Assembly: GCA_965240325.2 (NCBI GenBank)
Contig: OZ251227.1
Span: 1,116,001 to 1,180,000 of the forward strand
Origin: Rebecca billardiae RCC1528
Lineage: Eukaryota > Protista > Haptophyta
Direction: 5' to 3'
Length of the DNA stretch: 64,000 bases
The notes below the pieces were generated by a model. The model was not told where the DNA came from. It saw only the letters and a list, made by a program, of their open reading frames with translations, and searched no databases. Made by a program: the position numbers and the translations under genes. Shown here piece after piece: positions 2,333 through 34,179 of this stretch (position 1 is its first letter; the number at the start of each line of letters is the position of its first letter).

Positions 2333-2386
<54 letters not shown>

Positions 2387-3395: not shown

Positions 3396-3471
<76 letters not shown>

Positions 3472-6074: not shown

Positions 6075-6106
<32 letters not shown>

Positions 6107-6298
6107 TGCTGCGCTGCCGCCGCCGCGGCAGCCGCCGCCGCGCCGCCGCCGCCAGCGCGGCCGCCACCGCCGCCGCCGCCGCCACCGGCGGGGGCCATGG
6201 CGGCGAACGCCGCCGCCGCGGCGGACGACGCTGCGTGCGAGACGCTCGCTGCCGCGCTCGACGAGGAGAACGCCGCGCCAAACGCACAGGCTGAGAGC

Positions 6299-6349
<51 letters not shown>

Positions 6350-7299: not shown

Positions 7300-7453
7300 C
7301 GCGTCCACGCCGTCCGGGAGGTCCCTCGCGAGTCGCGAGTTGAGAGTCGCGGGACTCGCCAGCGCGGCTCGTCCGCCGCCCGGACACGGACCTTGCTGCC
7401 GCCTGCCGCTCGCCAGCTCTCGGCGGCGGCCCGGCCTCGGCGCGGCGGCGCCC
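7300..7453. promoter_or_regulatory. Putative bidirectional promoter between the BEACH and GRIP-golgin genes
   Basis: Only ~154 bp between divergent ATGs at 7299(-) and 7454(+). Confidence 0.45.
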
Positions 7454-10400: not shown

Positions 10401-11024
10401 CGCGCGCGGAGGCGGCGACGGCGCGCGCCGAGCTCGCGCGCACGCGCGACGACGCCGACGCGCTGCGCGACGCGCTCGACGAGGCGCGGCGCGAGGCCTC
10501 CGCCGCGGCCGAGCGCGGCGCGGCCGCGTCGGCCGCGCGCGCGCCGCCCGACGCGGCCGCGGCCGAGGCGGCCGCGGCCGAGCTCGCCGCCGCGCGCGCC
10601 GCGGCGAGCGAGGCGGCGGCGGCGCTCGCCGAGGCGCGCGCGCGCGCGCTCGGCGCCGAGGCCGAGGCGACGGGCGCGCGCACCCTCGCCTCCACGCTGC
10701 AGGAGACGCTCGGCGCCGTGAGCGGCGCGCACGCCTCTTCCCTCGGAGCGCTGCACGACCGGCTGATCAGCGCGACGCGCGAGGCGGCCGCGGTCGAGCC
10801 GCTGAGGCGCGAGGGCGAGCACTCGCGCGCGGAGCGCGACGCGGCGCTGGCGCGGCTGGCGGTCGAGCCCGACGTGCTCCGCCTCGCGCTGCGCGACGCG
10901 GAGAGCGCGCTGGGCACCGCCGTCCGCGAGCTGCGCTCCGAGCTCCGCGCCGCCAAGGCTCGCTCGCGCGAGCTGCTCGTCGCCCGAGACGCGGAGCTGC
11001 ACCGGCTGCGCGCGGCCGCGCAGC

Positions 11025-11056
<32 letters not shown>

Positions 11057-11638
11057 GAGTCGAGGCGGGCGAGCGAGGCGGCGGCCGTGGCAGCCGCCGA
11101 CGCCGACGCGGCGGCGCCCGAGTCAGGCGGCGGCGGCGCCGACACGGCGGCGCGCGCGAACGGCGGCGCGCCGCCGCCGCCCGCGACGCCCGCCACCGCC
11201 GCGCGCGCCTCAGCAGAGGGCGACCCCGAGCGCACGGCGGCGGCCGCGGCCGCGGCGCAGTCGGCGGAGTCGACGCCCGCGCCGCGCGCGAGCGCCGCCG
11301 GCGCGGACGGCGGCGCGCTCGCCGCGTCCCTCGAGCTGCAGCGCAAGCAGGAGCAGATCGCGCAGCTCGAGCACAAGCTGCTGCGCTCGTCTGAGCTCAA
11401 GCGGCGCGCGGCGGTGCGCATCGCCGCGCTCGACTCGCAGCTCGCGCGCGCGAACAACATCAAGAACCTGGAGTACATCAAGAACGTGCTGGTCAAGATG
11501 CTGCTGCTCGGCGACGAGGGCGTCGAGTCGCTCCTGCCCGTGATCGCCCACTTCTTTGCGTTCACGCAGGACGAGCTGCGCCAGATCGAGGCGGCGCGGC
11601 GCGAGCGCGCGCGCCAGAGCTGGCTGCCCGTGCTGTGA
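7454..11638 (+). CDS. GRIP-domain golgin (long Ala/Glu/Arg coiled coil)
   Basis: Starts MDFSAFKLDSLGDKLG at ATG 7454; probable in-frame intron ~7515/7524-7664; long coiled coil; C-terminal GRIP motif NLEYIKNVLVKMLLLGDEGVESLLPVIAHFFAFTQDE; stop 11638. Confidence 0.88.
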
Positions 11639-12152
11639 CGAAGTTCGGGTCACGCAGCCGTACTGAGACTTTGACAACGATGAATTGCGATGTATGATGG
11701 TGGCTTGATACTATGGCCCGTGCGAGCGCTCGACGTGCAAGGCGGGGGAGGATCCGGCCCCAGGTAGCACGATCATGTCGACGCGCCGCGCGTGGCCTCC
11801 AAACGCGTCGACTTTGGCCCCCGTTCGACCTGCACGCGAGACGACGAGGGCAGCAATCGTGAATCGGGCGAAAACACTCTTCGGTAATCCTCGCGCGATG
11901 TCCGCGCCGGCGTTGGATTTGGCGCGCGCGGCCCACGCGCTCCGCGCCACCGGGTACTGTCTTTTCGGCCGAGCGTCCCCAGAATTCAGGGAGCTGCGAG
12001 GGCGCCCGGTAGTGAGCGACGCGATTTTCTTTTCTTGGCGAGTCGATTTTCTTTTTCCTTTTCTTTTCTTATCTTTTCCCCGGGCACTGTCAATCTCGCC
12101 TGCCTAGTGCCTGAGCTGTGTGCGTCAGTCTTATTCTTAGTAAACTGTACAA

Positions 12153-13894: not shown

Positions 13895-15345
13895 TATCAC
13901 CGATTTCGGGCAACCGTGCTCATAAAGTCTGATTGTGTGACTTCAGATTGGAAAGTCAAGTCGAACCGACTTCGACTTCCAAAGCTTCTGTCGAATCCCA
14001 AAGCGAAGTGAGCTTGCGGTTTGCGTTCCACTTTGGAAGTCGAAGCGGAACACGTGTCAAAGCGGTGACCCCTCTTCTGAGAAGCTGGCTTCACACGTTG
14101 GGAGCACTTTGCCCAATCGGGTTCGCTTGTGCGGCGGCGGCGGCGGTGGCGGCGGCGAGGGCTTCTCCGGCGGCGGGGCGCGCACGGGGCACGGCGCGGC
14201 GGGAGCGGATGTGCTCGCACAGCCGGCGCGTGTGGACGGGCTGTTGTGGAAGTGCACGTGGCGCCCTCCTGCGCCGCGCGTCTTGCGCCACGCCTCTCTC
14301 GCCGCGGCTCAGGGCAGCGCGCATGCGCGCGCCGCCTCAAGGCCAGCCTAGTGCCGCGCCGCAGCCGACCGCGCGCGCGCCGTGCGCGGCGTGGCCGGGA
14401 AGGAACGGGCGCGGCTGCCGGGCGAGATGGCGACGCCATACGCGCACGCCATGCCGCCCCGCGACGCCGCGAAAGGGCACAATAACGGATCCACACAGCT
14501 GTTGACGAGTTGGCTGACCACTAGTCGTAACAAGCCAGACCTGAGCTCGAAGAAGATGATGATGAACGATCATCAGCGCGAGAAAAGCGTCGCATGGCGC
14601 ACCTTCTACATGGCCGTATGGTGATAGACACGCATGCACGCACAGCACTTGTGCCCGTCTGGCACCGTTCTGCGTCTCAATGATCGTCCCGATAAGGGTC
14701 ACGACCGCGAGGCCGTGCACGCCATTTGTGACCAGCCGAAGAGGCATGCAAACGGACCGACGACACGGTCGTCAAGGCGTGGCGGGGCGGCATGGGGAGC
14801 ACACGTGGGGTCGCCATCTCGCCCGGCAGCCGCGCCCGTTCCTTCCCGGCCACGCCGCGCACGGCGCGCGCGCGGTCGGCTGCGGCGCGGCAAGGCTGGC
14901 CTTGAGGCGGCGCGCGCATGCGCGCTGCCCTGAGCCGCGGCGAGAGAGGCATGGCGCAAGACGCGCTGCGCAGGAGGGCGCCATGTGCACTTCCACAACA
15001 GCCCGTCCGCACGCGCCGGCTGTGCGAGCACATCCGCTCCCGCCGCGCCGTGCCCCGTGCGCGCCCCGCCGCCGGAGAAGCCCTCGCCGCCGCCGCCGCC
15101 CGCTGACCAACTCGACCCTGTACTTTGGCTTCGCTTCGGAACGACTTTGCCACTCCGAGCCGTCAAGTTTGCGAAGCGGTACCGAAGCGAGACCCGTTCG
15201 CAAAGGACGTTCGACTTCATAGGACCGAAGGTGTTCTGAACTAGGAGCTGGCTTCCGAACACACTTCCGAAGAGGGGATGAAGTTGAAGTCTCACTTCAG
15301 CTTGAGAATCACTTTGATGAGCACGGTTGCCCGAAATCGGTTATA
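13895..15345. mobile_element. Non-autonomous foldback/MITE-like DNA transposon (~1.45 kb)
   Basis: 25-bp perfect TIR ACCGATTTCGGGCAACCGTGCTCAT at 13899-13923 and 15317-15341, with TA just outside on both sides (13895-96, 15344-45); internal ~300-330-bp inverted repeat at ~14140-14469/14775-15100. Confidence 0.75.
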
Positions 15346-15352
15346 AAGTCAT

Positions 15353-15841
15353 GGGAATCCTCCGGAAGTCCGACGAGGACCGACCGAGCAACCAGAACTC
15401 CGACAAACCTCCGCATCTCAGCACGGCGATTTCCGGACTGGCACCCCCGCCAGTTTTCCGACGGCCAGAAGCTTCGGGAGCGAGCAAATGGCGCCGCTCG
15501 CCCGCAACGCGGAAGATACCGCTCGCGGCGAACCGGCGCGAACGCCCGCCTTGTATTCGGGCGGAGTACCCTAATGAGCGGGGGTGGGCACTTTCGTATT
15601 GCGCGCAGCCTGACGCCCACCCGCGACGAAACGACGCCGTCGACTCCTCCCGCCCGGACCGCCGCCGGAACGTTGCTCGTCAATTAGTTAGAGAAATGCG
15701 ACGCCGGGGGGCGCGCCGCAAAACTTGCTCCCGAGCTCGCCACGAGGGAGGGCTGGGCGTGAGCACGACGTTAAGGGGGTACGCCTTCCACGCGCGCGGG
15801 CGTCGTGCGCGCGCCGCGCGGTCGCGCGCGGCGCATCGCGC
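15353..15841 (+). repeat. Left TIR of the MULE
   Basis: Reverse complement of 32630-33118 apart from a few substitutions and one short diverged patch (~15751-15763). Confidence 0.95.
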
Positions 15842-18800
15842 ACACGCACCGACCGTTCTTGTTCCCTGCGGCCTCCCCTCGCAGGAGTTCCCCCTTCTCG
15901 CATCCGAGTCGGTCTGAGGCGTCGACGGTCGCCGGCCGCGACGAGCAGGCAAGTCGCACTCGTGATTCGTGAATGGTGCGAGGTCGCGGTGGGCCGGGGC
16001 GGGTGTGTGTGGTCGGCAGCGATGTTGGTGGCGTGCGCCGCCGCGCGCGCGCACACCGCACCACTCCCATGCGCCCCCGTCCCCTGTCTGACGATGTGCC
16101 CCGTGTGTGTGCTCGCGCGCGCCTGCGTTTGCCTCTCCGCCGCACGTGCTGGCACGTACCGCGCAGGCGGGCATGCGGCATGTGTCCGCCGGCCCCAGCA
16201 GTCAGGACGACCTGCTGCTCGTGGACGCGGTGATCGCAGCGGCTGACGACGCGTTGTGCACGCTGCAGTTCTCCTCGGCAGCAGCCCCGTGGACGTTCAC
16301 CTTTGGTCTGGTGCTGTGCACCCTCGGCGTGGTCCACAGCACCGACGTGGGCCTTGGCGCCGCCGCCGCGCAGGTCACAGTGCCGCGCGTATGGGGTGGC
16401 AGCGGCGCCGACGCGCTGCTCACTGTGGTGGAGTGTGCGGAGTTGTTGGCTTCGCACCCGGACGCGCTGCGTGAGCGCGCGGACTCGGTGGCGCGCGTGT
16501 GCGCGGCGGCCCTTTGGTTCAGGGCCGTCGCGCAGATCGCCGTGCGCGCTGCCTGTGGTGCTTCCGCCGACGGGGCTCTGGCGGAGGAGGGCAGTTTCGC
16601 GGAGACGGCGCGACTGACGGCGTCCGCAGCGGCGCTCGGAGGGAAACCGGCGCCGCCGCCCGCAGGCACGTCCCACGCGCGCCGCTCGGGTGGCGCGGAG
16701 TCGCTGTCGCCGTCGTCCTCGGCGCCGACCCCAGGGCAGCACGCACGCGCCGCTGAGCACGCGCAGGGCGCATGCGCGTGGGCAGTGCGTGCGGCCTGGG
16801 CCGCCGCTCCGTTCCGGACGAAGCTGGCTCTGGCGGCGTTGTGCGCCCCCCGTCCGGATGCCCGCCCAGGTGCTGGGACTGGCGGAGGCGTCGACGACGT
16901 GCTCCCGGCGACGACGGCGGCGGCGGCGGCGCCGTCGGGCGCTTGGACGGGCGCGCCCCCCCCGTGCCCGCCGCTGTCATGCCCGTCCGAGGCGGTGATG
17001 TACTACGCGCGCGCCGTCTTCGGCGCGGACGCTGGCCAGTCCGAGCCTCTGTTCGTCGCCTTCGAGCGCGTGGCGTCGTGGCCAGCAGGCCGCAGCAGCC
17101 TCTGCGCGGACGCGCTGCGTGCGCGAGCGGCGGAGCTGCGCACGCAGGCGTACGCTGCCGTACGCGCGCTCTGCGCGCCCGTGCCGGCGCAGCCGCGCGC
17201 GTTCGTTCCCGCGTCGGCTGAGCAGGCACGCTGGCGCGACCAGCAGCTGCGTGCGGAACTCGAGAGCGCCCGCTTGGCGTGGCTCGGCGCCGTCTCGCAG
17301 GCCGTCGTGGGGGCCGGCGAAGGGGTGGCGGCAGATGGAGCGCCGCGCGCTGCCACGTCCGGCGCCGCCGCTGGACGTGACGCCGCCGTGCGCGCAGCCG
17401 CCGTCAGGCTGCGTGCTGCCGTGGTCGCCGACGGCCACGCCGGTCTTGCGGCCTTTGTGGCCGCGTGCGAGGACGGCTCGCTGCGCGAAGGGTGGCTGGC
17501 GCGGCCGTTGCTGCGGGCCGCCTCCACCATCGCCGAGCGCACCGTGTGGGCAGTGGTCATCCCGCTCGCGCCCGCGCTGGTGCACGTCGGCGAGGGCGCG
17601 CGTCTGCACCCCTTGCTCGACGCCACCTTCGCGCAGGCCCTCGTGGCCGGCGCGGCCGTCTCGCAGCCGCCAGTGACGCTGGTGCTGACGCTGTGCGGTG
17701 CGCACGCTGTCGTGGGCGCCGCTGCGCCGTGGCGCGACGAGGTGACGAGCGCGGCGTCGGGCGCGATGCGCCCTGCCTCCGCCGTGGTGGTGCCGCGCGC
17801 GCTGCCGCCTGCAGGCGAGCCGCCGCTGGGCGACGCGCTGGCGCCGACGCCTGCGGCGGCGCCCGCGCCCAGCCTCGACGACATGCTCGCGCATAACACC
17901 GCGGTTGGGCGCGCGCTGCAGGCCGCGTTTGGTGCCGCCGCTGCGGCACCGCAGCGTTTGGACATGGACATGGGCGTGCTGGTTGGCCCGTTGCGCGAGT
18001 ACGTGCTGCAGCACGCAGGCCTCGGCGGGGACGGCGATGCGTCCATGCCCTTGCTGGATGAGGGTGGCGGCCTCCTGCGCACGGTGCACGCGTACCAGTC
18101 CGCGGACGCGGGCGGCGAGGCGGCCGCGCAGCGGCGCTGGGGGGTGGGCGACCACGGCTCCTCTGCGCGCTCGGTGCTGGGGTGCCGCGCCTTTGAGCGC
18201 GTGGTGGCGGCGCTGAAGGGCGTCGTGAGCTCGTTGTTCCGCGGCGACGCCTCTGACGGTGTCCGCGGCCTCGACGCGCTCGACCTCACGGCCTGGCATG
18301 TCTTCGGGCGGCCGATGCGTCCGCCCGACGGGGGCCGCGGCACGTGCGACGACGGCGACGTCACGACGTACGGGTGGCACGTCGACGGCACGACCGACGA
18401 GGACCATCTGTGGACGGCAGTGGTCCTCTTGCACTTGCCGCAAAGTGTGCCCACCAATCCCTTCCCGCTGCAGACGGTCGGCGCGCGCCCCCCCGGTGCG
18501 CGCGCCGACGCCGTGCCGCTGCACGGCGACGTTGCCCTGCAGGAAAGCGCAGGTGCAGTGCACATCTTCCCCGCCATGTGGCATCACCGCTCGGCCCCCA
18601 GTGCGCGCGCCGCGTCCTCGGGGTCCGTGCCGTCGTCCTCGCGCAAGAGGCCTACGCGTCAGGGTGCGGCGGACGCGCTCGTCCTGAAGGCTGTGTTCTC
18701 ATTCGGGGGGCGGGGCCTCGCGGACACATTCCGCGCTTCGTTCACGCCGCCGCCGAGCGCGCCTCGCCCCGCCGCCACGCCGTGCGCGGCGCGCTCCGAC

Positions 18801-21800
18801 CCGCCTCCCACGCCGTATCGGCTCGTGCCCGCCCTCGAGCGCGGGCTCCAGCACTCGTTTGAGACCAGGCTGCGCTGGGGGGCTGAGCCCACGCGCGCTG
18901 GCGCTGACGCCCGCTTCCGGCTCGGCTCGCCTGCGCACCACGAGTACGTCTCCCGCCTGGTGGTCGACCTGCCGACCGCGGCGCACGGCCAGCAGGCGCC
19001 GTCGGACCACGAGCAGCGGGCCTGGGCGCAGTCGGCGCTGCAGCTGGCGCTGCCCGTGTGCGCTGCCGACGGCGCGCAGCTCGCACATGAGCGCGCAGCG
19101 GCGCCTGCCGTGCCCCACGTCGTGGGGCTTGCGGGCGGCCACCCCGCGCCTCACGCCGACGGCGGTGGGCGCGCGCCCACCGCCGCGGCCGCGCACGGCA
19201 CGGGCGCGCACGTGGGCGCCCCCTTTGACGAGGGCGCGCGGCCCCCACGCGCCGATGGCGTTGACGACCCGGCTGTCGGGCCGCGCGCGCCCACGGCCGT
19301 GCGTCGCCCCGACGCAGCGTCCGCCCCGCTGCGGCACACCGGCGCCCGCCAAAGCTCGAGCTCGGACGCGCCGGGCGCGCACGAGCCCGCGTCGCCGCGG
19401 CCTGGCGATGGGCACTCTTCGCCCGCTCGCGTGGCAACGCCAGCGCCGGGCGCACCCTGCGCTGCGGGCGACGCCGTGCCCTGCGTCGCGGTGACGGTGC
19501 CCGGCGCTGCTGTGTGCGCCGCGACGGCGCGCCCGCCACTCCACCCGGCGGGGCCGCCCCTCGACAGCAGCAGCGCGCGCGCGGTGATCGCGCAGCCGCC
19601 CGGCTGCGCCTCGCGCGCGCCGCCGCAGCCGCGCGGCGCCTCCGGTGGCGACGGCGGCAATGACGACGACGACGCGCGGCTGAGGGCCCTCCCTGCGCTG
19701 CCGCACGCAGGTGGCCTCTTGTCCGGCGGGGACCTCGCCCTGGCCCTGCACGCCGGCCAGCGTGCCCACCTCGGTGGCCACCTTGCCGACGCGTTGGCGA
19801 CGGAGAAGTCGGCGCCCGCATGGGCGCGCGGTGGAGTGCCCCTCGTCGACGCGTCCGTGGGCCATAGGACGCACACGACGGCGGCCGCCCGCGGCAACGC
19901 GCCGCTGTTCGCCCTGAGCGCGGACTGGCCGACGATGCGCGTCGGCGAGTCCGACGCCCGCGGCGAGCCGCTCGTCACGGACGCCGATCCCGCCAGTGCC
20001 GCCATCGACGTGCGCGACTGGGAGGAGGGCATCGCGGACGACGACTGCGCGGACGCCCGCGCGCGCGCGGCGCAGGCGGCACTGCAGGCGGACGAGTCCG
20101 CCGACAGCGACGCCGCTCGCGCGCGCGACCCGCTGGCTGCCCTCATGCCGTGTCCACCCATCGTCGCTCGCGCGCAGCCGCCCTCCACCGGTCCCGCCGA
20201 GCCCCGCGCCGGCCAGGCCGGCGCCCGGCTTGTTGCGCCGGAGTCGCTGCACCACGGCGGTGACGCCGGGTACTTCCGCTACTCCGCGCCGTCGAGCACC
20301 TCGGCGAGCACGTCGGCGGCAGCGCACCGCCTCGAGCTCCGGCCCCTGGCACTGTGGAGGAAAATGGGCTTGCGGGCGCCGCGCCCGTACTCCCAGGTGA
20401 AGGCGGACGCCACCCTGCTCGAGCCCCCGATGGTGCGCCAGGTGTACCCGCGCCTCGCCGACGCGCTCACGCACGCCTCGGAGTGCGCGCTGCACCGGGG
20501 GGCCATGCCGCCGACGCGGCGCGTCGACCGCGCCAAGCTGACGATCGGATGCCCCACGCCCGGGTGCCCGTCCGTGGTGGTGGTGGGCCCGTCGAAGTAC
20601 GTGGACACGTTTGGCGCGCCGCCGTGGGCCGTGCAACGCTCGGTCGCGCACGGCTCCATGTGCCGCAACCTGCGCATGGGCAAGGGGTCCGAGGAACACC
20701 CCATCGGCTCGCTGCCGCGCCCGACCAACCAGCCGGGCGTGCGCACGACGCCGTACTCCCAACACGAGCTCGGGCGGGCGATCGTCGAGGACTGGAAGGC
20801 GCGCTTGGCCCGGCGCGGGACCACGCACGCGCAGCTGTGCTACGGCCCGCAGCAAGCACGAGAGGTCGCGCGCCAGCTGGACGCAGAGCTCCCCATGGGT
20901 GAATCGCTCATCGCGCGAGCGCACAAAGAAGCGCGCGCCGAGATCTACGGGGACGACACGGCCATGTCGCGCGACCTCGTGGCCGTGTGCGCGTCGCTGT
21001 CGCAGGAGGGCAACGAGGTCGCGCCCATCATCTTCCACGAGAACTCGGTCGAGGACGCGCTGCTGGCCATGTTCGGCCGCGTGCACGACGAGGTGCAGCA
21101 GGGGCTGCCGGCGGGCGCGCAGCGCGCGGCCTTCAACCCCGACGCGGCGGAGGTGCAGAAGGCGCTGGCTGACGTGCGCGGCAAGAAGGCAGTGGGTGGC
21201 TTCCACTACGTGCCCAAGCAGGCCAAGGCGCTTTACCGCGAGCACTTTCACGCGAAGGGCAACACGGCCGCGTTCAGCGACGCGTGCTTCCTGCACCGCC
21301 CCGCCAGCGGTGGCGCGAAGCGCGCGGGTGCGCGCGCCCGCCGCACCCGGGCACGCCCTCGCGACGCCGCGTGCGTCCGTGCCGCCTCAGCGCCCGCCCG
21401 TCTGACCTGCCCGCGCGCACGCACGCGCGCGACGCAGGCATGCTCTTCGTCACGCTGGCCGTGAACGCCAACCGGCAGCTGTTCGTCTTGTGCGTGTCGT
21501 ACATCGTCGACGTGGAGTGCCTGGACTCGTGGTGCGCGCACGTCGGATACCTCATGCAGCACCTCGGCGGGGCGGCTGTGTGGGACGACCCCAACGGCGT
21601 CACCATCTCGGACGGCCAGAAGGGCCTGCGCGGCGCGTGGAAGCTGCTGTGCCCGCGCAGGCACCTCTTCCTGTGCACGTTCCACAAGCGCCAGACCTTC
21701 ATCACGGGCTACGCACACTCGGCGAACGAGGTGCCCACCATCCTGCGCGTGTTCGACGCGTGCGTGGACGCGTTGACCGAGGAGGTGTGGGAGGCCGCCT

Positions 21801-24800
21801 GGGTGGAGATGCCAGAGTCGGCCAAGCGCATCCTCGACGTCATCCCCCGCGAGGAGCTCTTCCCGTGCTTCGCGCCGGTGTCCCTGCGCGGCTACGTGAC
21901 GTCCGCGCCGGCGGAGTCCTTCATGCACTGGCTGCTGCCGGTGCGCAAGGCGCAGGGCCCGGTGTGGATGCTGCTCGACCTGCACGACAACCTCTTTCGC
22001 CTCTACGCGACGCACCGCAGCGTCGCCGTGCGCCACGCCCTGAAGCCCGACGCCGATGATGAGGTGCACGGGTTGCCGCCACGGCACCTGGAATACGTGC
22101 GCCAGCAGGTGAGCACGGCGCGCACGCTCTCTCAGGTGGAAGTGCACCGTGTCCTCGACGGGCCGCACGCAGGTGCCCTGCGCATGCTCAACACCACGGA
22201 CGGCTCGGCGCCGCGCCACGTGTACCTCGACGAGTTCCGGTGCTGCGCGTTGCTGCGCCGCAAGCGCCTGCCGTGCATGCACTTCTGCCGCGTGGCGACC
22301 TCCGTCGGCCGTGCCATGGGCACGTGCTTGCCCCAGGACCTGCGCTGCGAGACGTGGTTCGCGCAGGTGGGCCTTCGGGTCGAGCGCGACGCACACGACA
22401 CCCGGGTGGACACGCTCGGGCGCGTCGTGGCCATCACCAAGCTCGACGTCATCACACCGCCCCAGCGCCTGGAGGACGCCATTGCGGCTCTGCTGCTGCC
22501 CGCTCTCGCCAAGCGCGCCCTGCTCGAAAAGTACGTGGCCATGCCAGCGGTGCCCGCGCGCGTGGGCAGGCCCGCGTCCTCGGCGCGACGGCTGGCGTTC
22601 TGGGAGGGCCGCGCCGGGGCGCGCCACCCGCGCGCACCGCGCGCGCGCGCGCCGCGCGTGCAGTTGGGCAAATCCGCGGCGTCGTACGTGCGCCCCTTGA
22701 GGGAGCAAGCCCCGGACGGCGACTTCGCCCGGCGCGTGCGCGAAGCGCACCGCGACGAGCTCGCGCGTGTGCTCGAGGGGCTGCCGGAGCACCTGTACGG
22801 CATCGCGCACACGCACGTGCTCGACGACACTAACGTGCTCGTGCGCGTGGCCGGCCCGCTCCGCGAGGGTGTGGTTGCGAACCAGCGACGTCGCCACTTT
22901 GCCACGTACACGGCCGGCACGACCGCCGCCGCGCAACTGCGCTGCTGCGCGTGTTTCGACCCCGAGGCCGCGGACCTCAGCGCGGCGTGGCCGGCGGACT
23001 CGCCGCCGATCGACCCCCGACTGGCGTGCCAGGGCTGCGCCTGCTTCATCCACTCGCCCGCGCAGTGCAAGTATGTGTGGCACCTCGGCGCGCTGGACAG
23101 CGGGCTGTACATGTGCACGTGCTGCTACTTCCTGCTCGTCGCGGGGGCGTGGAAGCGCCTGCGCGAAGCGCGCGCAGCCGCGGCGGGCGAGGCGGCGGCG
23201 CCCGACGGGCCGCGCGGCGCGAGGCCGGAGGACGTGCCATACCACCGTATGCGCGGACAGCACGGCGGTGGGGCCGCGCGCGGCGACCCCGCGCGCACCG
23301 CAGGCGCGCGCGGGGGCCGCGCAGGCGGCCGCGGGGGCCGCGGCGCGGCGGCGCCCGCGCCCGGGCGCGCGCAGCCGGCGGCCGCCCAGACGCGCGACGG
23401 CGCCGCCGCGGCGGGCGCGGGCGCGCGCGGCGGCCCGCGCCGGCACTGCGCGCGCGCGATCGCCTCGCAGGCACTTGGCGGCACCGGCGTACGCATGGGC
23501 TTCGCGACGGCACCGATGCCAAACGCCGCCACGCAGCGGCCGGCCGCACCGCCTGAGGGCACGACGGGCCCGCGCAGTGGCGCGGACGCCGGCACGACGC
23601 CCGCCGCGCGCGCGCGCGCGCACGCCGCGGAGCCGCTGCCGGCCACGGGCGACACAGTACCGCTGGCGGCGACTGAGCATCCCTTCCGCCCCCCGTGGCC
23701 CGGCGCCCACGCGCCACCGCCACCGGGTGCGCGAGTCCCTCGGGCGCGCGCGGGCGCGGCAGAGCCACCGGCGGAGGCGGCGGAGTCCGAGTCGGCGTAC
23801 GCGCGCCTCGCTGACGACAGCGCCGCAGTGCTCGCGGCGTTGCGGCGCATACCTGGCATCGGTCGGGGCAGGGCAGCCATGTTCATGTGCAGTCGCGGCC
23901 TGTCAGCACCGTGGCCCACGCTCAGCGAGACGGCCGGTGACGCATTCGGCGCGTCCAGCGCGACGACGGGCAAGGTGCTGGCACAGTTTGCGCGCGCCGC
24001 CGCCGCCCCCGCCGAGCTGGCGCGCGCGCACGCGTCGCCCGCCGTGCCCGCCGAGGGCAGTGGCGGCGCGAGGGGCTCGGGCGGCGCCGCTCCGAACGCG
24101 GCCTCCCACGTGTGGGCGCACGCAGGCGCACACGACGTCGCGGCGGCGGCGGCGGGCCTGGCGGACGTCCTGGCTGGCGGCGGCGGCGCGGGCGCAGGCG
24201 CCGCAGGCCAGGCGGGCGCCGCGGCTGGCACCTCCCGCGCGGGCGCGGGGGCCGCGTCTGCGCCGTGCGCGCCCAAGCGCCCTCGGACTGCGGCCGCCGC
24301 CGACGACGCGGGCGGTGCGGCCGCGGATGGGCGCCTGCCGCCGGCTTCGCGCCAGGCGGCGGGCGCCCGCGCGTCCACGGCGGGGCCATCGTCGGCGGCG
24401 CGGTCGGTGCCGACGCCGGGCCCAACGCGCGCAGGCGCCGACCTGCTGGGGACGGCGCGTGGCACGTCTGGTGCCGCGGACGACACAGCCGTCGCCACCG
24501 CGGACGACGCGGTCGCCCACTTGGCGCGCACTGGTCTGCCGGTGCGCGACGCTGGAGCGCGCGCCGCGGGCGATGACCGCCACGCGCCGGTGCGCCTGTT
24601 CCACGCCGCCGACGCCGCCGCCGGCGCAGACGACCACGACGCCGAATTCGCCCGATTACGGCTCTGCTGCGCCCAGGCAGTGCTCGACGACCTCTGGGGC
24701 GCGGGCGCCGCACAGCCGTTGCCCGTGCCAGCCGACGGTGACGACGTGCTGCACGCGGTGCTCGCGCACGCGCACGCGCGGGCGCGTCCGCCCAGCACGC

Positions 24801-27079
24801 TTGAGGCCCTGTGGTGGGCGTGCTGCGCGCGGCGCCTGCGCGCGGCGGCCGCGTCGTGGCTGGCCGCGCACGCGCATGCCACGCCCACCGAGCACTCCGT
24901 CGGCTGGGGTGGCGCGCTGGGCCCGGCCGAGTCGGCAGAGGACCTGCGAGCGCAGGCGCGCTTCATCGGCTTGTGCGGCGCTGACGTGCGCGCACTTCCC
25001 CCGGAGAGCGCAGGTGGCGACGAAGCTGGGCAGGCGCGTTTGCGGGCTCTGCGCATGGTGGCCCCCGACGACTCGTCGTCGTGGCACACCCCCGGCCAGG
25101 GCGTGCGCGATCTGGACGACGCAGTGACGCTGGCAGTGCGAGCGGCGGAGTACACGTGCGACGGGTACGTCAGCAGCCCGGGCAACACGTGCGATGGCCC
25201 TGAGTGGTACGCGGCAGTCGCTCGCGCCGCCGGCGTGCACCTCCTCGTCTTCGACATGGCCTACGCACGCCGAGCTCGCGACGTGCACGGCGTCGCCATG
25301 CGTGAGCACGTGCGGTGGTATCCTCCGACGGCAGTGCGCGTGCCGCCGGCGCCGGCGGCGCCACGCGCTCGCGGGGGCGCCGGCGCGAAGCGCCGGCGCG
25401 CCGACACGCCCGACGCAGGCGCCGCGCACGCGGACGCACGTCCGCTGTGCGAAGCGCGCCTGAGCCTGGGACGCGAGACGCACGCACGCGTCCTGCGCAC
25501 GCTCGACGTCGGGGCGATGGGCACCGGCTGGGTGGCCATCGTGCGCAACGTGTGTCCTCGCCGGCAGTTCTACGCAGTGGTTGCGCCGCAGGCCACCCCG
25601 CGCGCGCACGGGGTGTTGCCGGCGTCGCGCTGGAGTGCGTTCCAGCCGGCTGCGGACGCGCACGTGAGGCTGGCGTCCAGGCGGCGCGGGTGCGAGGTGG
25701 ATGCGCTGGACCCGAGCGCGTTCGGCACCGAGGTGGTCCCTCTCGACGGCTCCGACGGGGCATGGCGGTGCGACGTGGGCTTGGGGCTGCGCCTGGCCTT
25801 GGGCGAGACCGCCGCTGACGTGACGGCGGAGCGATGCCGCGCTGACGTGACGGCGGGTGATGCCGCGCCACGCGGCGCAGCCGCGCCGCGCGCCGCGGCG
25901 GCGACGGACGCCACCGTGGACGCGGGTGCGGCGGCGCCGGCGCCCGCCGGGCACGGGGCTGCGCCGGCTGCGGTGGCTCCGGCGGCCGCCGCACACGTGC
26001 ACGCGCCGGTGGACGACGCCGCGGTCCTGCTCGAGCGCCTGGGCTTCCCCGTGCTGCCCCTGCCGCCGGCGTTGCCGCCCGAGGCGCGGGCTGGTGCACA
26101 GACCGGAGCACCCGGCGGCGTGGATGGCGACGGCAACGTCGCCGCGGCCATCCGCGAGCTCTTCGGCGGCGGCACGAGCGTGCAGGACGTTCCCGGCGAT
26201 GGCGACTGCTACTTTCACGCGTGGCTCGCGCACGACACGCGTGGCGTGCGGGCCGACCTGCCCGCCGCCAACGCGCGCGCGCAGACGCTGCGCGACGGCG
26301 TGTGCTCGTACATCGCGTCGTGGGAGGACGAGCACGGACCGGGCGAGACGCTCGGCACGGCGTCGGCCACGGCGTCGGCGGCAAGCGCGCTCGGCATGCT
26401 TGGCGTCAAGCCAGCATCCATCCCCCGGGCCCGCACCGGCCAAGGACTCGAAGTGCAGGACGAGGACTGGCAGGAGGTGCTGCCACTGCCACTGCGACAT
26501 ACTGGAGGCGTGCGGACGCTGGGAGCAGCGGCGCGCGCGTACGCGCGCGGCGCCCGGTACACGGGCGACGGCGCTGGCGCGCATGCGGCGCGCGCTGGTG
26601 CGTGGTCGGCGTGGGGCTCGCACGTCGCGACGGCGCGCGCCACGGGCCTGCCGCTGGTGGTCCTTGAGCTGCGCGGCGGGGCTACGCCGGAGGAGGCGGC
26701 GTGGCGCGCGTTCACCGACAACGTCTGGTTCTACCCCGTGCAGACGCGGCCGGGCCTTCGCTGGCGGCGGACTGACGACGGCGGGCGCAAGGGCAGCGTC
26801 GCCGTGAGCACGCATGCGCACCTGCGCCTGCGTGACGAGCGCACGCGGCGCGCCTTGCAGCGTCTGGACGTCACGCAGTTGGGCACGACGTGGATGGCCG
26901 TGGTGTACGACGGCCGTTGCCACTTCGGCGCGGTGGTGTCGGCGACGGCGCCCCTGGAGGCGCGTTCGGCGCGCGACAACAACGAGGGGCGTCTGGCGCA
27001 CTTCATGCGAGCTACATCACCCTTGCAGGGGTACGTTGAGTGCGCACCACGCCGCCTGAGCACGCCAGGTGCCAGCTAA
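15696..27079 (+). CDS. MULE transposase polyprotein (2OG-Fe(II) dioxygenase + Zn-finger DBD + DDE + SWIM + PHD-like + HhH + 2x OTU), ~3,600 aa
   Basis: Predicted exons 15696-15778, 15885-15948, 16167-21327, 21438-27079, all joining in frame (10,950 nt); alternative start ATG 16173. Intron 21328-21437 joins FSDACFLHRPASGGAKRA^GMLFVTLAVNANRQLF. Also ISDGQKGL...HLFLCTFH, TSAPAESF, SWIM CCALLRRKRLPCMH, DBD CPTPGC...W...HGSMC. Catalytic D 21279, D 21611, E 21914. Confidence 0.88.
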
Positions 27080-30000
27080 CAGAACGACAGGCGCCGACTC
27101 ACGGCACCGGCCGGCCGGCCTGCGTCCGAGCTGACGACGACATAGCACGGGCCGGCACAGTGTGGGCCCCCGGCGGCGTGTATCAGTGTTGTCGCGCGTG
27201 GCGCTGCTTGCATCCCGCTAAGACCTGCGCTAAGACCTTCTCGGCGGGCCCCGCCGTAGGCCCTTGTGGCGCCGTCACTGCGAGTGGCGCAGAGGCGCTG
27301 GCCGGGGGGGTGCCTGTGGCCGTGTGCTCGGAGAACCGGGCTCAGGCCACGGCGATTCCGACGAGCCACTCCGCCGGCACCCCGGGTGCCGAGCTCGTGG
27401 CCAGATGCTGCCAGCGGTGGCGGCCACCCGCGTGGCCGCCCCGGGTGGCGCGCAGCCTGTGCACGCCACCGCGACGCGCGCGCGCGCACGGGGGCGGTCG
27501 GGCGCGACTGAGCCAGGGCTGCGCGTACACGCCGCTCGGCGTGCGCACGGCTGGCGCCGCCCGATGTGGTGTGTGCGCGCACCTGTGGGCGGCGCGTGGG
27601 CACGTCAGGACGCGCCCTTGTGGGTCGGCGTCTACTGCGCGGCCGGCGGGGGCTGGCCCGCGGGGGCTTCGTCGGCCTGCGCGGCCGGCGCACGGAGCGA
27701 CAGTGCAGCGGCCTGGCGGGCACACGCGAGTCAGGGGGCGGCACTCGGCGCCGCGCGCGCTGGCCGAATGCGACCGGCGGCGGCGCGCCACGCCGTGCCG
27801 TGGGTGCGCGCGACGTGGGCGCAGCGGACGCAGCGCTCACCGACGGGCCCGCAGCCGGGGCGTGCGCGCCGTGCGGTGCTTCGCCTGTTGGCAGCTGGAC
27901 GCACGCCGCGTGCGCCGACGCGTGCGGGCCGGGCTGTGCGCCACCTGCGCTGCGGTCCATCATGAACTGCGTCAACGCCTGCATAGACGCCACCATCGCG
28001 CTCGCGATCTCGTCACGTTTCATTGCGGCCGCGCGATCCTCGTCGCGTCGGCGCGCCGCCTCCGCGCGCTCCTGCTGGCGCCAGGCCTCGTCCGCCGCGC
28101 GCTCCTGCCGGCGCCGCTCGTCGTCCGCCGCGCGCCAGGCCTCGTAGTCCTTCTGGCGCTTGGCGTCGTTCGCAGCGAGTTGTCCGATCGCTTGTGCCAT
28201 TGCGTTGGGGATGCCGTGCACCATCTCAGCGAGCTGGGCGTGGGCCGCAGCGAGCTCGGTGCACATGCGCGTCGCCTGTTCGGGTGGCCCGGGTGCGCGC
28301 GCGACGGCGGATGGCCGTGTGACGGCGACGCGGCCCGGGTCGCCGACCGGCCGGCGCGCCACCACACGCCCACCGGCGGCGCCGCCCGCGCCGCCCGCGT
28401 CGGCGCCGCGTTCGTTCAGGCGACGCTTGCGCGCTGGCGCCGCCTGTACGTGCCGCGCCAGCGAGGGCGCGCGCCTGTGGAGCGCGGCGGCGTACATCTT
28501 CGGCGCGTCCACGCCGCTGCTTTTGCCGGTGACTGGGTCCGCCGGGTGCGTCCAGAGCCGATCCTGGCAGAACGGGACGATGTCAGCCCACACGCTGATG
28601 CACAAGGGGCGAAAGTCCACAATCGCACCCACGGGCGGCGCGGCAGGTGGCGTCCCGGCAGGCGGCGGGCGCGCCAGGGCGGCTGCCTTCACGGGGTCGC
28701 GCATGTGCGGGACGAAGAACAGCGTGCCGAAGTTGCCGGCGTCGGCGTCGTCGCCGGCCGCCGCGCGGCTGTGCGTTGACAGCGCCTCCGTCGACTTCCA
28801 CGAGCGCGTCTTCGAAGGCACGTAGGTGAACTCGAGCACCTCGTCCCGGTGGAGTGCCCGCGAGCTCGTGTCGGCGTTGAGCACGCGGTCGTAAGCACCG
28901 GCGTTATCCTCGGAGACGGCGAGGAGCTCGAAGGTGAGCCGCTTCTTCCGCTCGGGCGCGACGAGCCGTGCGCTGACGATGCGCACCTTGGTGAGGTAGT
29001 CCGCCGCCTCGAAGGACGCACCATCGCCCACGCTGACGTCGGCGAGGGCGTCGTATCGCAGGTGTGCCGCCTTGACGCGCAGCACGAGCGCCGAGGCGCA
29101 CGCGATGGCCGCCGCGACGCACGTGTGCTTCGAGGCGAGCATCAGCTCTTGTTCATGGACGGGCAGCTCGCCGACGACGCCTGCGACGCGCACGCGCGTC
29201 CCACCGCCCGGCCGGGGGAGAGGCCTGTCAAACGAGCGCTGCGGGCGGCCGGCGACCATGATCTGGTGGAGCGTGTGCAGCAGGTCCGCCGACGCCGCCG
29301 TGCCCCCAATCACGTCGTAGTTCGACTGCACGTACGTGAGCGCCGCCTCCGCGATGGCCGCGGCGTTCGTCATGAGCCCGGGCGGGTCGCCATCGGGCGC
29401 CCAATGGCATGGCCCGATGCCGAGCGCGCTGCACACCGCGGAGGCGCCCATGAGCACGTCCGTGGACGTCGGGACCACGTCCCGGCGCGGGCGGGGCGGC
29501 AACGCGTCCGTCTCGTCCGGGCTGGGCGGCGAGTCGTGGAGCGCGGGGGCGGCGTGCTGGACGGGGGGCGCAATGGCCCGCGGCGGCGCTGACTGCAGCT
29601 CGCACGCAGCAACCTCACGCCGGCTGACGGCGGCGGCGAAGGCGTCGACCGTGAGGTCCGTGCACGTCGCAGCCGTCATCGCGCCCGCCGCACCACTGGG
29701 CGGCCGCGTGGCGAAGGTGAGGAGGCGCCAGCCCTTCTCGAAGCGGATGGCGTACGCGTGCGCGCCGACGACGGGCTCCGACTCGTCGGTGTCGTCGGTG
29801 TCCACGGACCGGTAGTCCACCACGGCCACGGCGGCGTGCAGCAAAGGCGACGTCCCCTGCTCAGCGGGCGCCCGCAGCGGCGTGGGCACAAGCGCGCACC
29901 AGGAGGGCGCCTGTGCAACCACGGCGGGGAGGCCGAACACCGCCTGTCCCGAGCGCCGCATCGAGGGCAACGCAAGCGCCCGGTGAACCCAGGGCGCGTC

Positions 30001-32775
30001 GCCGCCTGCGACGCCATCGTCGTCGGCCTCAGCGTCCGCTAAGGCGACTCGCACGTCCGCGTCGAGGACGTAGGGCAACGGGCCGTGCACACCGAAGTGC
30101 TCGCCTGCTGCGCGCAGGGCGAGCTCAGAGACAGAGCCGCCGACGCTCGCGGCGGCGCCGGCGTAGAACTCGCGCACCGCATCGTCCACCTCGCTGCGCG
30201 TGTACATGGCGCCCGAGGCGCACAGCTCGCGCACAGCGTCGGCATCCGTGAGCACGCCGAAGTGCTTGTTGTTCGTGGCATCGCACACCACGTTCACCAC
30301 GCGGACCGTGCCGCCGCCGCCGCCGAGATGCCGTGACGCGAACGCGCGGTTGAACCTGAGGATGGCCGGCACCAATCGGCCGTTGTTCGGTTGCGGCCCG
30401 TGCTTCGTCGTCCGCGCGTCCGCATCCGCCACCGCGCTGGGGCGCACCAGCACGTGCGCGTGCGCCTGCGCCGGCGCGGCGGGCGTGTCTCCGCCGAACC
30501 TCCGGCGTTTCCCGTAGATGCCGCTGAAGAAATGATCCACGTGCTGCAAGACATCGCTCATCGCGAACAGCTCGCGTGAGCCGCCGTCGCCGCTGCCGTA
30601 GACGCCGCCGCCGTCGTCAGCGTGGCCGCCACCGCCGGGTTGCGCGGCGGCGGGCGCCTGCTGTGGTGCATGGGAGTGCGACCCCGCTGCGCCAGCCGCC
30701 GCTCCACCCATCGACGCCGTCGCCGCCCGTGCCACCTCGCCCGAGGCAGCACCACCGGAGTCATCTGAGTTGACGCCCGCGGGGCCGTCGGCGGCCGCAG
30801 CCGGCGCCGGCGGCGCCGGCGCCGCCGCGGTGACGCCGGTGGCAGCCGCCCGCGCCTCGGCGGGTGCGCGTGGCGGCTCGGCGCGTTCGGCGCGCGTCGC
30901 GGTCGACGCCGTCGCCGCCCGTGCCACCTCGCCCGAGGCAGCACCACCGGCGTCATCTGAGTTGACGCCCGCGGGGCCGTCGGCGGCCGCAGCCGGCGCC
31001 GGCGGCGCCGGCGCCGCCGCGGTGACGCCGGTGGCAGCCGCCGGCGCCTCGGCGGGTGCGCGTGGCGGCTCGGCGCGTTCGGCGCGCGTCGCGGGGCCGC
31101 CGGCGGCCGCAGGCGGCGGCGCCGGCGCCGCCGCGGTGACGCCGGTGGCACCCGCCAGCGTTTCGACGGGTGCGCGTGGCGGCTCGGCGCGTTCGTCGCT
31201 TGTCGCGGGGCCGCCGGCGGCCGAAGGCGGCGCCGCCGGCGCCGCCGTGACGCCGGCGACCGCCGTCGGCGCCGGCGGCGGCGGCGGCGCCGGCGCCAGC
31301 GTTGCGACGGGTGCGCGTGGCGGCTCGGCGCGTTCGTCGCTTGTCGCGGGGCCGCCGGCGGCCGCAGGCGGCGCCGCCGGCGCCGCCGTGACGCCTGCGA
31401 CCGCCGTCGGCGCCGACGGCGGCGCCGGCGCCGAGGTGACGCCGGGCAGCGCTTCGGCGGGTGGCGCAAGTGGCGGCTGGCGGCGCATGGCCCGCGTCCG
31501 CACGCCGCCGCGCCCGTTGTGGTGAGCCGCCCCCTGCGCGCCGCGCTGCCCCGCAGCCTCCTGCTGGATGCCCTGGGCGGCGTAGCTGCCGCCGCCCACG
31601 CGCGTGCTGCCGTGGCGGGCCGGCCGGCCGTCGGCGCCCTGCTCGGCGCCCTGCTCGGCGCCCGGCTGGGCGCCCTGCTCGGCGCCCTGCTCGGCGCCCG
31701 GCTCGGTGCCCTGCTCGGCGGCCTGCTTGCCATGCCCGGCGCCCGGCTGGGCGCCCTGCTCGGCGCCCTGCTCGGCGCCCTGCTCGGCGCCCTGCTTGCC
31801 CTGCTCGGCGCCCGGCCCGGCGCCCGGCCCGGCGCCCTGCCCGGCGCCCGGCTGGGCGCCCTGCTCGGCGCCCTGCTCGGCGCCCGGCTCGGCGCCCTGC
31901 TCGGCGGCCTGCTTGCCCTGCTCGGCGCCCGGCTCGGCGCCCGGCCCGGCGCCCGGCTGGGCGCCCTGCTTGCCCTGCTCGGCGCCCTGCTCGGCGCCCG
32001 GCTCGGCGCCCTGCTCGGCGGCCTGCTTGCCCTGCCCGGCGCCCTGCCCGGCGCCCGGCTGGGCGCCCTGCTCGGCGCCCTGCTCGGCGCCCGGCTCGGC
32101 GCCCGGCTCGGCGCCCTGCTCGGCGGCCTGCTTGCCCTGCTCGGCGCCCGGCTCGGCGCCGAGCAGGGCGCCGAGCAGGGCGCCCTGCTCGGCGCCCTGC
32201 TCGGCGCCCTGCCCCTGCTCGGCGCACTGCTCGCCGGCGGGCGGCGCACGCACGTGCGCCGCTGGCACCCTCTTCAACGAGCCTGCGCCCTCGACTGTTC
32301 CATCCGCGGACGCACCGACGGTGTCGCCAGGGACCGCAGCCCACGCATGAGCAGACACTCCCTCGGCAGCCCGGAGGACGTACGTCTGCACTCGCCCGTG
32401 TGCGCCGACCCCAAGCGCCGCGACCACAGCACGGACTGCCGGTGCACCCTGCTCGTACACCACGTCCACAGCAGCCCCGTTCGCGAAGCTCGTCGCAGTC
32501 GGAGTCGTCCCCGCAGGCGGCGGCGGCCTGCGCGCGGCACGCGGGCACGACGCCGCGCAACGACGCAGAACGCACGGCGTGACGACATGCGCGAGCGCAC
32601 GCCGCGCGCGCGAACGAAGACACACGCGCGCGCGATGCGCCGCGCGCGACCACGCGGCGCGCGCACGACGCCCGCGCGCGTGGCAGGCGTACCCCCTTAA
32701 CGTCGTGCGAGGCATCGATCGTCCCTCGTGGCGAGCTCGGGAGCAAGTTTTGCGGCGCGCCCCCCGGCGTCGCAT
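27076..32775 (-). CDS. Second (accessory) MULE gene, ~1,800 aa, unknown function; Tudor-like N-terminus, peptide repeats, C-terminal coiled coil
   Basis: Uninterrupted 1,899-codon ORF starting inside the right TIR (ATG 32775 or 32715); probable in-frame introns 32692-32528 and 27582-27457; protein-like globular segments and coiled coil ([36 protein letters not shown]). Confidence 0.75.
30711..31440. repeat. Coding tandem duplications (192-bp x2 and 141-bp x2) in the accessory gene
   Basis: Segment starting at 30711 recurs at 30903; segment at ~31165 recurs at ~31306; both periods are multiples of 3. Confidence 0.85.
31630..32225. repeat. 12-bp coding minisatellite (GGCGCC + 6-nt cassette) encoding ([12 protein letters not shown])n
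   Basis: About 50 units such as GGCGCCCTGCTC and GGCGCCCGGCTC. Confidence 0.92.
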
Positions 32776-33118
32776 TTCTCTAACTAATTGACGAGCAACG
32801 TTCCGGCGGCGGTCCGGGCGGGAGGAGTCGACGGCGTCGTTTCGTCGCGGGTGGGCGTCAGGCTGCGCGCAATACGAAAGTACCCACCCCCGCTCATTAG
32901 GGTACTCCGCCCGAATACAAGGCGGGCGTTCGCGCCGGTTCGCCGCGAGCGGTATCTTCCGCGTTGCGGGCGAGCGGCGCCATTTGCTCGCTCCCGAAGC
33001 TTCTGGCCGTCGGAAAACTGGCGGGGGTGCCAGTCCGGAAATCGCCGTGCTGAGATGCGGAGGTTTGTCGGAGTTCTGGTTGCTCGGTCGGTCCTCGTCG
33101 GACTTCCGGGGTTTTCCC
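32630..33118 (-). repeat. Right TIR of the MULE
   Basis: Inverted copy of 15353-15841, ending ...GACTTCCGGGGTTTTCCC. Confidence 0.95.
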
Positions 33119-33200: not shown

Positions 33201-34179
33201 ATGCCGCGGCGCGTGCACCTGGAGGGCACGGCGGCAGAATGCCGATGCGCGCCGTGTTCGGTGATCCGAATAGCCATCTCGCCGATGGTGCTCTTCGTGA
33301 TCGGGCTTGTCGTCCTCTCGTACATCCCACTGGTCGTGTGGCGCAAGCACACGGGCGGAGTGCTGGACGTTGCGCACCTGGTCTTCTTCCACGCGATGCT
33401 CGTGATGCTGCTCATGTCGTACTTCATGACGCTGTGCGTGGACCCCGGGACGCCGCCGGACTGGTGGGTGCAACAGCAGCTCGAGAGTGGGAACCCCGAG
33501 CAGTACAGACGGTGCGCCAAGTCGGACAAGCTCAAGCCGCCGCGCGCGCACTTCTGCTCCGTGACGCAGCGGCTCGTGCTGAACATGGACCACTTCTGCC
33601 CGTGGGTGGACAATACGGTGGGGTACTACAACCGCAAGTTTTTCATCCTTTTCCTCGTCTACAGCTGCATCACGTGCCTCTACGCCGCAGGTGCGCATGC
33701 CTGCCGCCCGGCACGTTCCGTCAAGCGCGGGCGCCGACGTGTGTCGTTCGTCCCGCCCCTGCGCCCATGCAGGCATGCTGTACTTCGAGGGCGCACTGGA
33801 CGTGCGCGCGCAGCGCTCGGAGGGCTTCGCGCCGGCGACGACGAGGCTTATGGCCATGATGGTCGACGGCGCCCTCGGCGTCGCCCTCATCTTCTTCGCC
33901 TTCTTCCACCTGAACATGGCGGCAAAGAACGAGACGACGATTGAGAGCTTTGGGTACGCCGACCCGAGATACGATCTTGGCGCTGAGGCCAACCTGGAGC
34001 AGGTGTTCGGCCGGAACAAGCTCATGTGGCTACTCCCCGTGTACGGCGATGGGCCCTGCGGCGACGGTATGCACTGGCCCATGCGTGAGCTCCGGCCTGC
34101 GGAGGATGACCCGTCGAGGCTGAATCCGTCCGTCCTCGCAGGCGATGCGCTGAGTGATGACACAGACGGCAGCAGTTGA
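33201..34179 (+). CDS. DHHC-family protein S-acyltransferase (DHFC variant)
   Basis: Exons 33201-33690 and 33773-34179 (GT-AG intron 33691-33772). TM helices, DPG motif, KPPRAHFCSVTQRLVLNMDHFCPWVDNTVGYYNRKFFILFL, NETTIE, YDLG..NL.QVFG, GDGMHWP. Confidence 0.93.

Follow-up and report, generated by a model that had tools for sequence, protein, structure and literature searches.

What kind of genetic element fills the 17,766-bp interval at positions 15353-33118 of a 64,000-nucleotide stretch from the haptophyte Rebecca billardiae RCC1528 (GenBank assembly GCA_965240325.2, contig OZ251227.1, forward-strand positions 1,116,001 to 1,180,000; hereafter the window), and do the protein domains encoded around its transposase have a role in transposition? 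A sequence-only reading of this locus had described a giant two-gene Mutator transposon carrying a putative chromatin-modifying toolkit. In our analysis, the element has two defined ends, long reading frames and a complete catalytic triad, and it is a member of the Mutator superfamily. As a whole, it is likely to be an intact, autonomous Mutator-like element (MULE) with a two-gene layout similar to that of MuDR, in which OTU-like and 2-oxoglutarate (2OG)-Fe(II)-oxygenase-like regions have been fused to the transposase. The coordinates of all features are collected in Table 1.

Ends, reading frames and transposase of the element

First, we found that the element is bounded by two long terminal inverted repeats (TIRs). 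An inverted-repeat search returned the paired arms 15353-15749/32722-33118 (397 nt, 99%) and 15763-15846/32625-32708 (84 nt, 95%), and a gapless comparison of the two TIRs, near-identical as claimed before and measuring 494 nt rather than ~489 bp, gave 475 identical positions and 19 mismatches. The first 9 nt account for three of these mismatches and a 13-nt block (TIR positions 398-410) for 11, the other five being scattered; the longest arm was identical at 396 of 397 nt. The terminal 41-mer was present at the two element ends only (0 occurrences expected by chance in the window search), and no further copy of any part of the element was found in the rest of the window. Both TIRs contain the same inward-facing ATG. 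The divergent 13-nt block (15750-15762 vs 32709-32721) yields a consensus splice donor, GGC/GTGAGC at 15759, in the left arm only. Judged from sequence, a candidate splice joining this site with the AG at 16165-16166 would keep the reading frame of the plus-strand gene (gene 1), and the right arm has no matching site.

Second, we examined the reading frames. Because the window is very rich in guanine plus cytosine (GC; 57-88% in 2-kb bins, and ~67-80% in the bins across the element), long open frames alone are weak evidence. Three long frames lack stops, at 16107-21464 (plus strand, 1785 codons), 21284-27079 (plus strand, 1931 codons) and 27076-32775 (minus strand, 1899 codons). Across 200 composition-preserving shuffles, the longest stretch without a stop averaged 519 codons and reached a maximum of 1087, against 1785-2013 observed. 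Codon periodicity was detected in all three frames on the stated strands, with the GC maximum at the third position of the codon and the minimum at the second; it was weaker across Ala/Gly/Pro-rich linkers, and none was seen in 27000-27900 or in the TIRs. All tandem-repeat units inside the frames (12, 21, 27, 33, 39, 42, 93, 105, 114, 141 and 192 bp) are divisible by three, which fits frame-preserving expansion within coding sequence. Gene 1 and the minus-strand gene (gene 2) are convergent and meet at 27076-27079.

Third, splicing the two plus-strand frames completes a DDE triad with the spacing of the family. The first frame ends in ...AAFSDACFLHRPASG, and the second contains MLFVTLAVNAN...ISDGQKGL...CTFH...APAESF. 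The predicted intron would begin with the GT at 21310 and end with the AG at 21436-21437; this donor reproduces exactly the distance between D1 and the next strand in relatives, whereas use of a second possible donor, at 21328, would make the product six residues longer. The first exon would encode an Ala-rich N-terminal part, the 2OG-like region, long linkers, the N-terminal part of the transposase and D1. Read from the ATG at 16173, the predicted spliced product comprises 3,592 residues with a single, terminal stop, which, together with the stop-free lengths of the three frames, bears out the earlier statement that the element has no evident disabling stops. The triad is also intact as claimed, since D1, D2 and E all occupy invariant alignment columns of the relatives, as do the C-x2-H motif and the K/G following the Asp.

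To place this transposase, we used the residues encoded at 21440-23500 in an exhaustive HMMER phmmer search of 1.84 billion representative proteins (E<=1e-3). Only 14 proteins matched (best E 1.8e-27, identities 25-32%), nearly all of them from metagenome or raw-read assemblies, with one cluster belonging to the green alga Pycnococcus provasolii. Among these relatives, P0003 and P0012 passed the cut-off of Pfam Transposase_mut (PF00872), and P0011, P0013 and P0014 that of Pfam MULE (PF10551); P0011 and P0014 were slightly under the SWIM cut-off (19.1 and 19.4 bits, respectively, vs 19.6), and P0010 also reached or neared one of these three cut-offs. The window's own transposase piece scored 17.4 bits against Pfam MULE (E 0.006; cut-off 27.6). 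Pfam gave no match on whole frames, and shorter pieces gave only this weak MULE match and a weak HHH match. A profile of the close relatives matched the solved Mutator-family transposase 6xg8 weakly (E 0.15), and a PDB sequence search with the N-terminal 578 residues and the transposase N-terminal region returned nothing. Because of this linked homology (14 relatives, several passing or nearing Pfam cut-offs) and the conserved catalytic motifs, the element is assigned by homology to the Mutator superfamily, within a divergent and sparsely sampled algal/metagenomic clade. Frames, TIRs and linked homology thus agree on a two-gene convergent Mutator element of 17.8 kb, as originally described.

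The extent of the conserved transposase could be read from five short contigs of relatives (L001-L005), which share ~3.2 kb of conserved coding sequence, corresponding to a ~1,000-residue transposase with the order N-terminal region, DDE, SWIM-like finger, GRP motif and C4HC3 finger. Conservation with these relatives starts only at the position matching residue ~1595 of open reading frame (ORF) 1. In L005, the called gene ends shortly past the finger and a CCHC knuckle. None of the five contigs, which are too short to exclude its presence, showed similarity to the gene 2 sequence. A metagenome scan for related loci found two short contigs, and none were found in genome and viral scans.

Two further relatives showed features of their own. 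P0023 from P. provasolii (1234 residues), annotated as a 'methyltransferase', falls in the same 90% identity cluster as MULE/SWIM transposases of that alga; Pfam finds the MULE domain alone in it (residues 841-924), and its N-terminal 800 residues have no family. The contig of the distant relative P0009 (ENA ERZ27265164, 11,068 bp) contains a 456-residue transposase-like gene followed by a convergent 941-residue gene without a Pfam family, a layout that recalls the two-gene arrangement in the window.

Regions fused to the transposase, and the second gene

The C-terminal region of gene 1 contains VQDVPGDGDCYFHAWLAH, then AWSAWGSHVATARATGLPLVVLEL, then MAVVYDGRCHFGAVV, which correspond to three conserved OTU blocks in the correct order. 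In the second of two OTU-like domains, we identified the Cys loop VPGDGDCYFH (C at 26207-26209), a WG..A..G.P.VV block and the His loop GRCHFGAVV (H at 26921-26923). A language-model search with this piece gave a score of 0.93 with 175 shared features, and the ten best named matches all belonged to one clan. Its neighbours were OTU clusters of haptophytes and giant viruses, with every named match an OTU family, and its Cys loop was identical at 12 of 16 positions to that of the viral OTU structure 7y5m (E 0.08). The first OTU-like domain lies ~490 residues upstream, and its homology to the second extends across 129 residues (E 2e-6); in this copy, DGDC is replaced by DGDD (24743-24745) and the His of the His loop by Q. 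On these motifs and neighbours, the OTU identity is highly probable.

The N-terminal half of gene 1 contains the motifs GWHVDGT, AVVLLHLP, VHIFPAMWHH and LKAVFSF in this order (H at 18378-18380 and D at 18384-18386 within WHVDG). They are compatible with the HxD...H...K/R arrangement found in prolyl-hydroxylase-type enzymes; an insert of ~30 residues precedes the basic residue. The language-model score of this piece was 0.85, which is a lead only; one third of shuffled proteins reach the same score. Its named matches were nearly all 2OG oxygenase families. Most of the 100 nearest clusters, one of them from haptophytes, also belonged to such families (OGFOD2-like, DUF4246, 2OG-FeII_Oxy_3, PhyH and similar), and 29 had no family. 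We therefore regard the 2OG fold as plausible and lean towards it. The 'eraser' role proposed for this region is a different matter: neither TET/JBP nor JmjC was among the named matches (a weak test), and the sole lead points to OGFOD2-like and prolyl-4-hydroxylase-type families. As these are protein hydroxylases, the label is unsupported, and a TET/JBP or JmjC enzyme was rejected.

Downstream of the SWIM-like motif, a Cys-rich finger (CCAC...CQGCACFIH....C...CTCC) has the C4HC3 pattern of PHD fingers, with H-x4-C instead of the canonical H-x2-C. Its ligands are invariant in all five aligned relatives (P0004, P0005, P0006 and the translated contigs L001 and L004; six sequences with the window). 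This conservation suggests that the finger is part of the transposase of the clade and not a module added in this element. A single helix-hairpin-helix (HhH)-like motif, LRRIPGIGRGRAAMF, was not significant against Pfam HHH (E 0.17; 12.2 bits, cut-off 24), and the HhH domain claimed earlier is not established.

Gene 2 comprises, in order, a short N-terminal segment, AEQG/AEPG repeats, Pro/Ala-rich duplicated segments, a core, a charged helical segment and a tail. Clear codon periodicity was seen across 27900-30600 and 31500-32200, and the last ~290 codons (27076-27960) are Arg/Pro-rich without periodicity, so that this tail may not be translated. The AEQG/AEPG peptides are encoded by a minisatellite of 50 copies of 12 bp (31631-32212), and duplications of 192, 141 and 114 bp occupy 30711-31433. 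The two copies of one 192-bp unit are 98% identical, suggesting that the expansion was recent and preserved the frame. All repeat units of gene 2 (12, 39, 93, 105, 114, 141 and 192 bp) are multiples of three. The core had no detectable relatives: Pfam, PHROGs, NCBIfam and PDB searches were blank, and the best language-model score was 0.40.

With regard to the surroundings, 83 bp separate the right end of the element from the ATG of a downstream DHHC palmitoyltransferase gene, so that the element sits in the 5' region of that gene, a typical site for a MULE. Approximately 250 bp to the left of the element is a foldback (14142-15100) with inverted arms of 208 nt (98%) and 117 nt (93%) around an AT-richer centre of ~300 nt; its sequence is unrelated to the TIRs. 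The first part of the window (1-12000) has a GC content of 78-88% per 2-kb bin, above that of the remainder.

Table 1. Positions of the features in the 64,000-nucleotide window
Feature	Position	Strand	Remarks
Left TIR	15353-15846	+	494 nt; contains ATG at 15696 and, in this arm only, a GTGAGC donor-like site at 15759
Gene 1, first long exon	16173-21309	+	First in-frame ATG at 16173; frame open from 16107
2OG-Fe(II)-oxygenase-like region	18309-18740	+	Motifs; plausible
Mutator-type transposase core	20890-22290	+	Conserved N-terminal region, D1, D2, C(2)H, E and SWIM-like motif; intron inside
D1	21279-21281	+	AAFSDACF
Predicted intron	21310-21437	+	128 nt, phase 1, GT..AG; from homology
Gene 1, second long exon	21438-27079	+	Runs to stop codon
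D2	21611-21613	+	ISDGQKG
C(2)H motif	21674-21685	+	After D2
Catalytic E	21914-21916	+	APAESF
SWIM-like CC..C.H	22235-22288	+	In transposase core
Cys-rich C4HC3 finger	22940-23134	+	Cx2C..Cx2C-x4-H-x4-C..Cx2C; downstream of SWIM-like motif
Single HhH-like motif	23831-23890	+	Weak
First OTU-like domain	24596-25639	+	Predicted inactive
Second OTU-like domain	26147-26959	+	Complete motif set
Gene 2, convergent long frame	27076-32775	-	1899 codons; ATG inside right TIR
Coiled-coil-like segment after gene 2 core	~27960-28270	-	
Globular-looking core of gene 2	28396-30588	-	731 residues; good periodicity
In-frame repeats, N-terminal part of gene 2	30711-32212	-	
Right TIR	32625-33118	-	494 nt; contains ATG at 32775, start of the long minus-strand frame
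DHHC palmitoyltransferase host gene	33201-33944	+	Pfam DHHC, E 1.9e-21

Weighing the alternatives

Several results weigh against an intact MULE with functional additions. Pfam (including OTU PF02338), NCBIfam and PHROGs found no OTU, 2OG or PHD domain even at E<=10. AlphaFold models built without an alignment offered no fold evidence for the second OTU-like domain (pLDDT 33.6) or the 2OG-like piece (pLDDT 34.7). Word-based homologue searches found nothing for any of three queries: the transposase region (sought among long proteins), the 2OG piece or the OTU piece. The 2OG piece had no match in a PDB sequence search or phage tblastn either. The contigs L001-L005, too short to exclude these regions, showed no similarity to the 2OG-like or OTU-like regions of the window, and the fact that the L005 transposase gene stops soon after the finger suggested that these additions are not common to the whole clade. 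The flanks of this copy contain no clean target-site duplication (TSD) of 8-11 bp. Finally, the only public run containing the element (X1) is of unknown kind, with low-depth contigs of 200-400 nt and no splice joints; 12 of its contigs match the element at >=99% identity and four at 90-99%, the latter being a hint of further, diverged copies.

The domain claims of the sequence-only reading are therefore upheld in part. For OTU, a catalytically complete domain beside an inactive copy is backed by motifs and the language-model score, but not by Pfam or NCBIfam. For the 2OG-Fe(II) dioxygenase, short motifs and the language-model lead stand against blank profile libraries. The PHD-like 'reader' keeps its PHD-type pattern but loses its role as an added reader, since the finger belongs to the transposase clade. 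The profile libraries searched recovered none of these three domains, and MULE only weakly.

The alternative that survives best, although we consider it unlikely, is that the MULE is genuine and the 2OG-like and OTU-like stretches are passengers, either host fragments captured in the manner of Pack-MULEs or GC-rich filler, with no role in transposition. Capture of host fragments is known for MULEs (PMC6446971), the curated libraries all miss these stretches, relatives seem to be without them, long Ala/Gly/Pro-rich linkers flank them, and stops are rare at ~76% GC. Nevertheless, the observed frames are 1.6-1.9 times as long as the longest of the 200 shuffles, and strong codon periodicity runs through both regions. 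Moreover, the proposed catalytic residues are complete in the second OTU-like domain and in the 2OG-like region and lost in the first OTU-like domain, as would be expected if one enzyme was maintained while its neighbouring copy degenerated.

It is also quite improbable that the plus-strand half comprises more than one gene, the 2OG-bearing 5' part (16.1-20.3 kb) being a separate unit or a trapped host gene and the 3' part the transposase. From 16107 as far as D1, one uninterrupted frame of 1785 codons keeps the same periodicity, and the sequence bears no mark of a gene boundary. Such a division would nonetheless agree with the ~500 low-complexity residues between the 2OG-like region and the transposase N-terminal region and with the late onset of conservation in relatives (ORF1 residue ~1595).

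The absence of a TSD is odd, given the near-identical TIRs. The best candidate, TATAAAGT/TATAAAAT, matched at 7 of 8 positions with a 3-bp offset; as the best of 1024 combinations tried in AT-rich flanks, it is not significant, and it was rejected as a convincing TSD. A composite origin of the 17.8-kb unit, in which for instance recombination or assembly had linked two copies or solo ends, would explain the missing TSD and would suit ends that differ at 3 of the first 9 nt yet at 1 of the next 388, but it is very unlikely in view of the symmetrical architecture, the same inward ATG in both TIRs, the exact convergence of the genes and an interior that is not repeated elsewhere in the window.

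Known relatives and possible biological role

An intact, autonomous MULE with fused additions can be compared with several known systems. The MuDR element of maize carries the convergent genes mudrA and mudrB in ~4.9 kb, with TIRs of ~220 nt and a 9-bp TSD. The element described here shares with MuDR a Mutator DDE transposase, long TIRs and two convergent inward genes, the second of which has no homologues outside its lineage; at the sequence level, this organisation is consistent with the frames and with the presence of an ATG in each TIR. On the other hand, it is much larger than MuDR (17.8 kb), its TIRs are longer (~494 nt), no 9-bp TSD was seen, and its distant transposase, with a Pfam MULE score under the cut-off, is part of a 3,592-residue product with OTU-like and 2OG-like regions.

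Rehavkus, a MULE-related group of arthropods and annelids, has a PHD-type finger in the transposase, TIRs that reach 400 bp and, directly internal to the 3' TIR, a minisatellite (PMC6446971). Compared by description, the C4HC3 finger and the minisatellite of 50 12-bp copies, located ~410 bp inside the right TIR, resemble these features. However, Rehavkus has one ORF with no OTU or oxygenase reported, whereas the minisatellite here is itself part of the second gene's coding frame.

Fusions of MULE transposases have been described, with an OTU-superfamily protease in Medicago and with a PHD finger in Ciona and C. elegans (PMC1702500), as have Ginger1 transposases with OTU, Ulp1 or PHD, and OTU domains in Helitrons (PMC2836005); the functions suggested for such protease fusions are processing of the polyprotein or a connection with the ubiquitin pathway (PMC1702500; PMC2836005). 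Like the Medicago MULE and Ginger1 proteins, the gene 1 product would combine a cut-and-paste transposase with a C-terminal papain-like protease of the ubiquitin family and/or a PHD-type finger. Unlike these and the Helitron proteins, it has tandem OTU-like domains (one inactive), an N-terminal 2OG-like region and a several-fold greater length, and it comes from an alga.

VANDAL transposons encode the epigenetic regulator VANC (PMC5735166), SET genes are carried by MuDR/HarbingerS elements of Phytophthora, and fungal KDZ and other DNA transposons carry TET/JBP dioxygenases (PMC12730594). The parallel is a DNA transposon that encodes a modifying activity which may counter host control, and TET/JBP are also 2OG-Fe(II) enzymes. 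The 2OG-like region of the window differs from TET/JBP in being OGFOD2/prolyl-hydroxylase-like and in being fused to the transposase instead of forming a separate gene. Gene 2 had no detectable relatives in general searches, in which no VANC sequence was directly compared.

The combination of domains had originally been put forward as unrecognised. In a literature search that did not extend to Repbase or Dfam, we found no description of a MULE protein joining a 2OG-type oxygenase with tandem OTU domains. Because transposon-borne OTU, PHD and epigenetic enzymes have published precedents, the element is less unprecedented than proposed. Its single features are mostly precedented, and it is the size and combination of the fused transposase protein, which is unusually large, that set it apart.

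In the proposed mechanism, two long inward-facing TIRs, each with a start codon, would serve two genes that converge in mid-element. The centre of gene 1 would be the DDE transposase, which would cut and paste the element via its TIRs. The flanking N-terminal ~1,400 and C-terminal ~1,300 residues look like additions of the window's lineage when set against the relatives; the former would include the probable oxygenase of the OGFOD2/prolyl-hydroxylase type and the latter the tandem cysteine protease domains of the OTU type, the first inactive and the second complete. The repeat-rich gene 2 would occupy the place of mudrB or VANC. As a guess from family resemblance, the complete OTU may cleave the giant protein into working parts or strip ubiquitin-like modifiers off the transposase or host factors, and the oxygenase may hydroxylate a protein substrate. 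It is speculation, and unlikely in this full form, that the element encodes its own protein-modification toolkit, in which the transposase-fused oxygenase and active OTU (with the inactive OTU as a binding module), plus gene 2 as a partner, would counter ubiquitin-dependent or chromatin-based host restriction.

If that toolkit reading were true, it would represent a new counter-defence route for transposons in algae. If the fused domains are active, the element would be a compact natural cut-and-paste transposon with a deubiquitinase and a hydroxylase in its transposase protein and would extend the known transposon-borne counter-silencing functions (VANC, SET, TET/JBP). Irrespective of this, the element gives a view of a Mutator transposase clade that is sparsely sampled, with only 14 detectable relatives in 1.84 billion representative proteins, and, as a young-looking autonomous element, it is a possible genetic tool for a very GC-rich alga.

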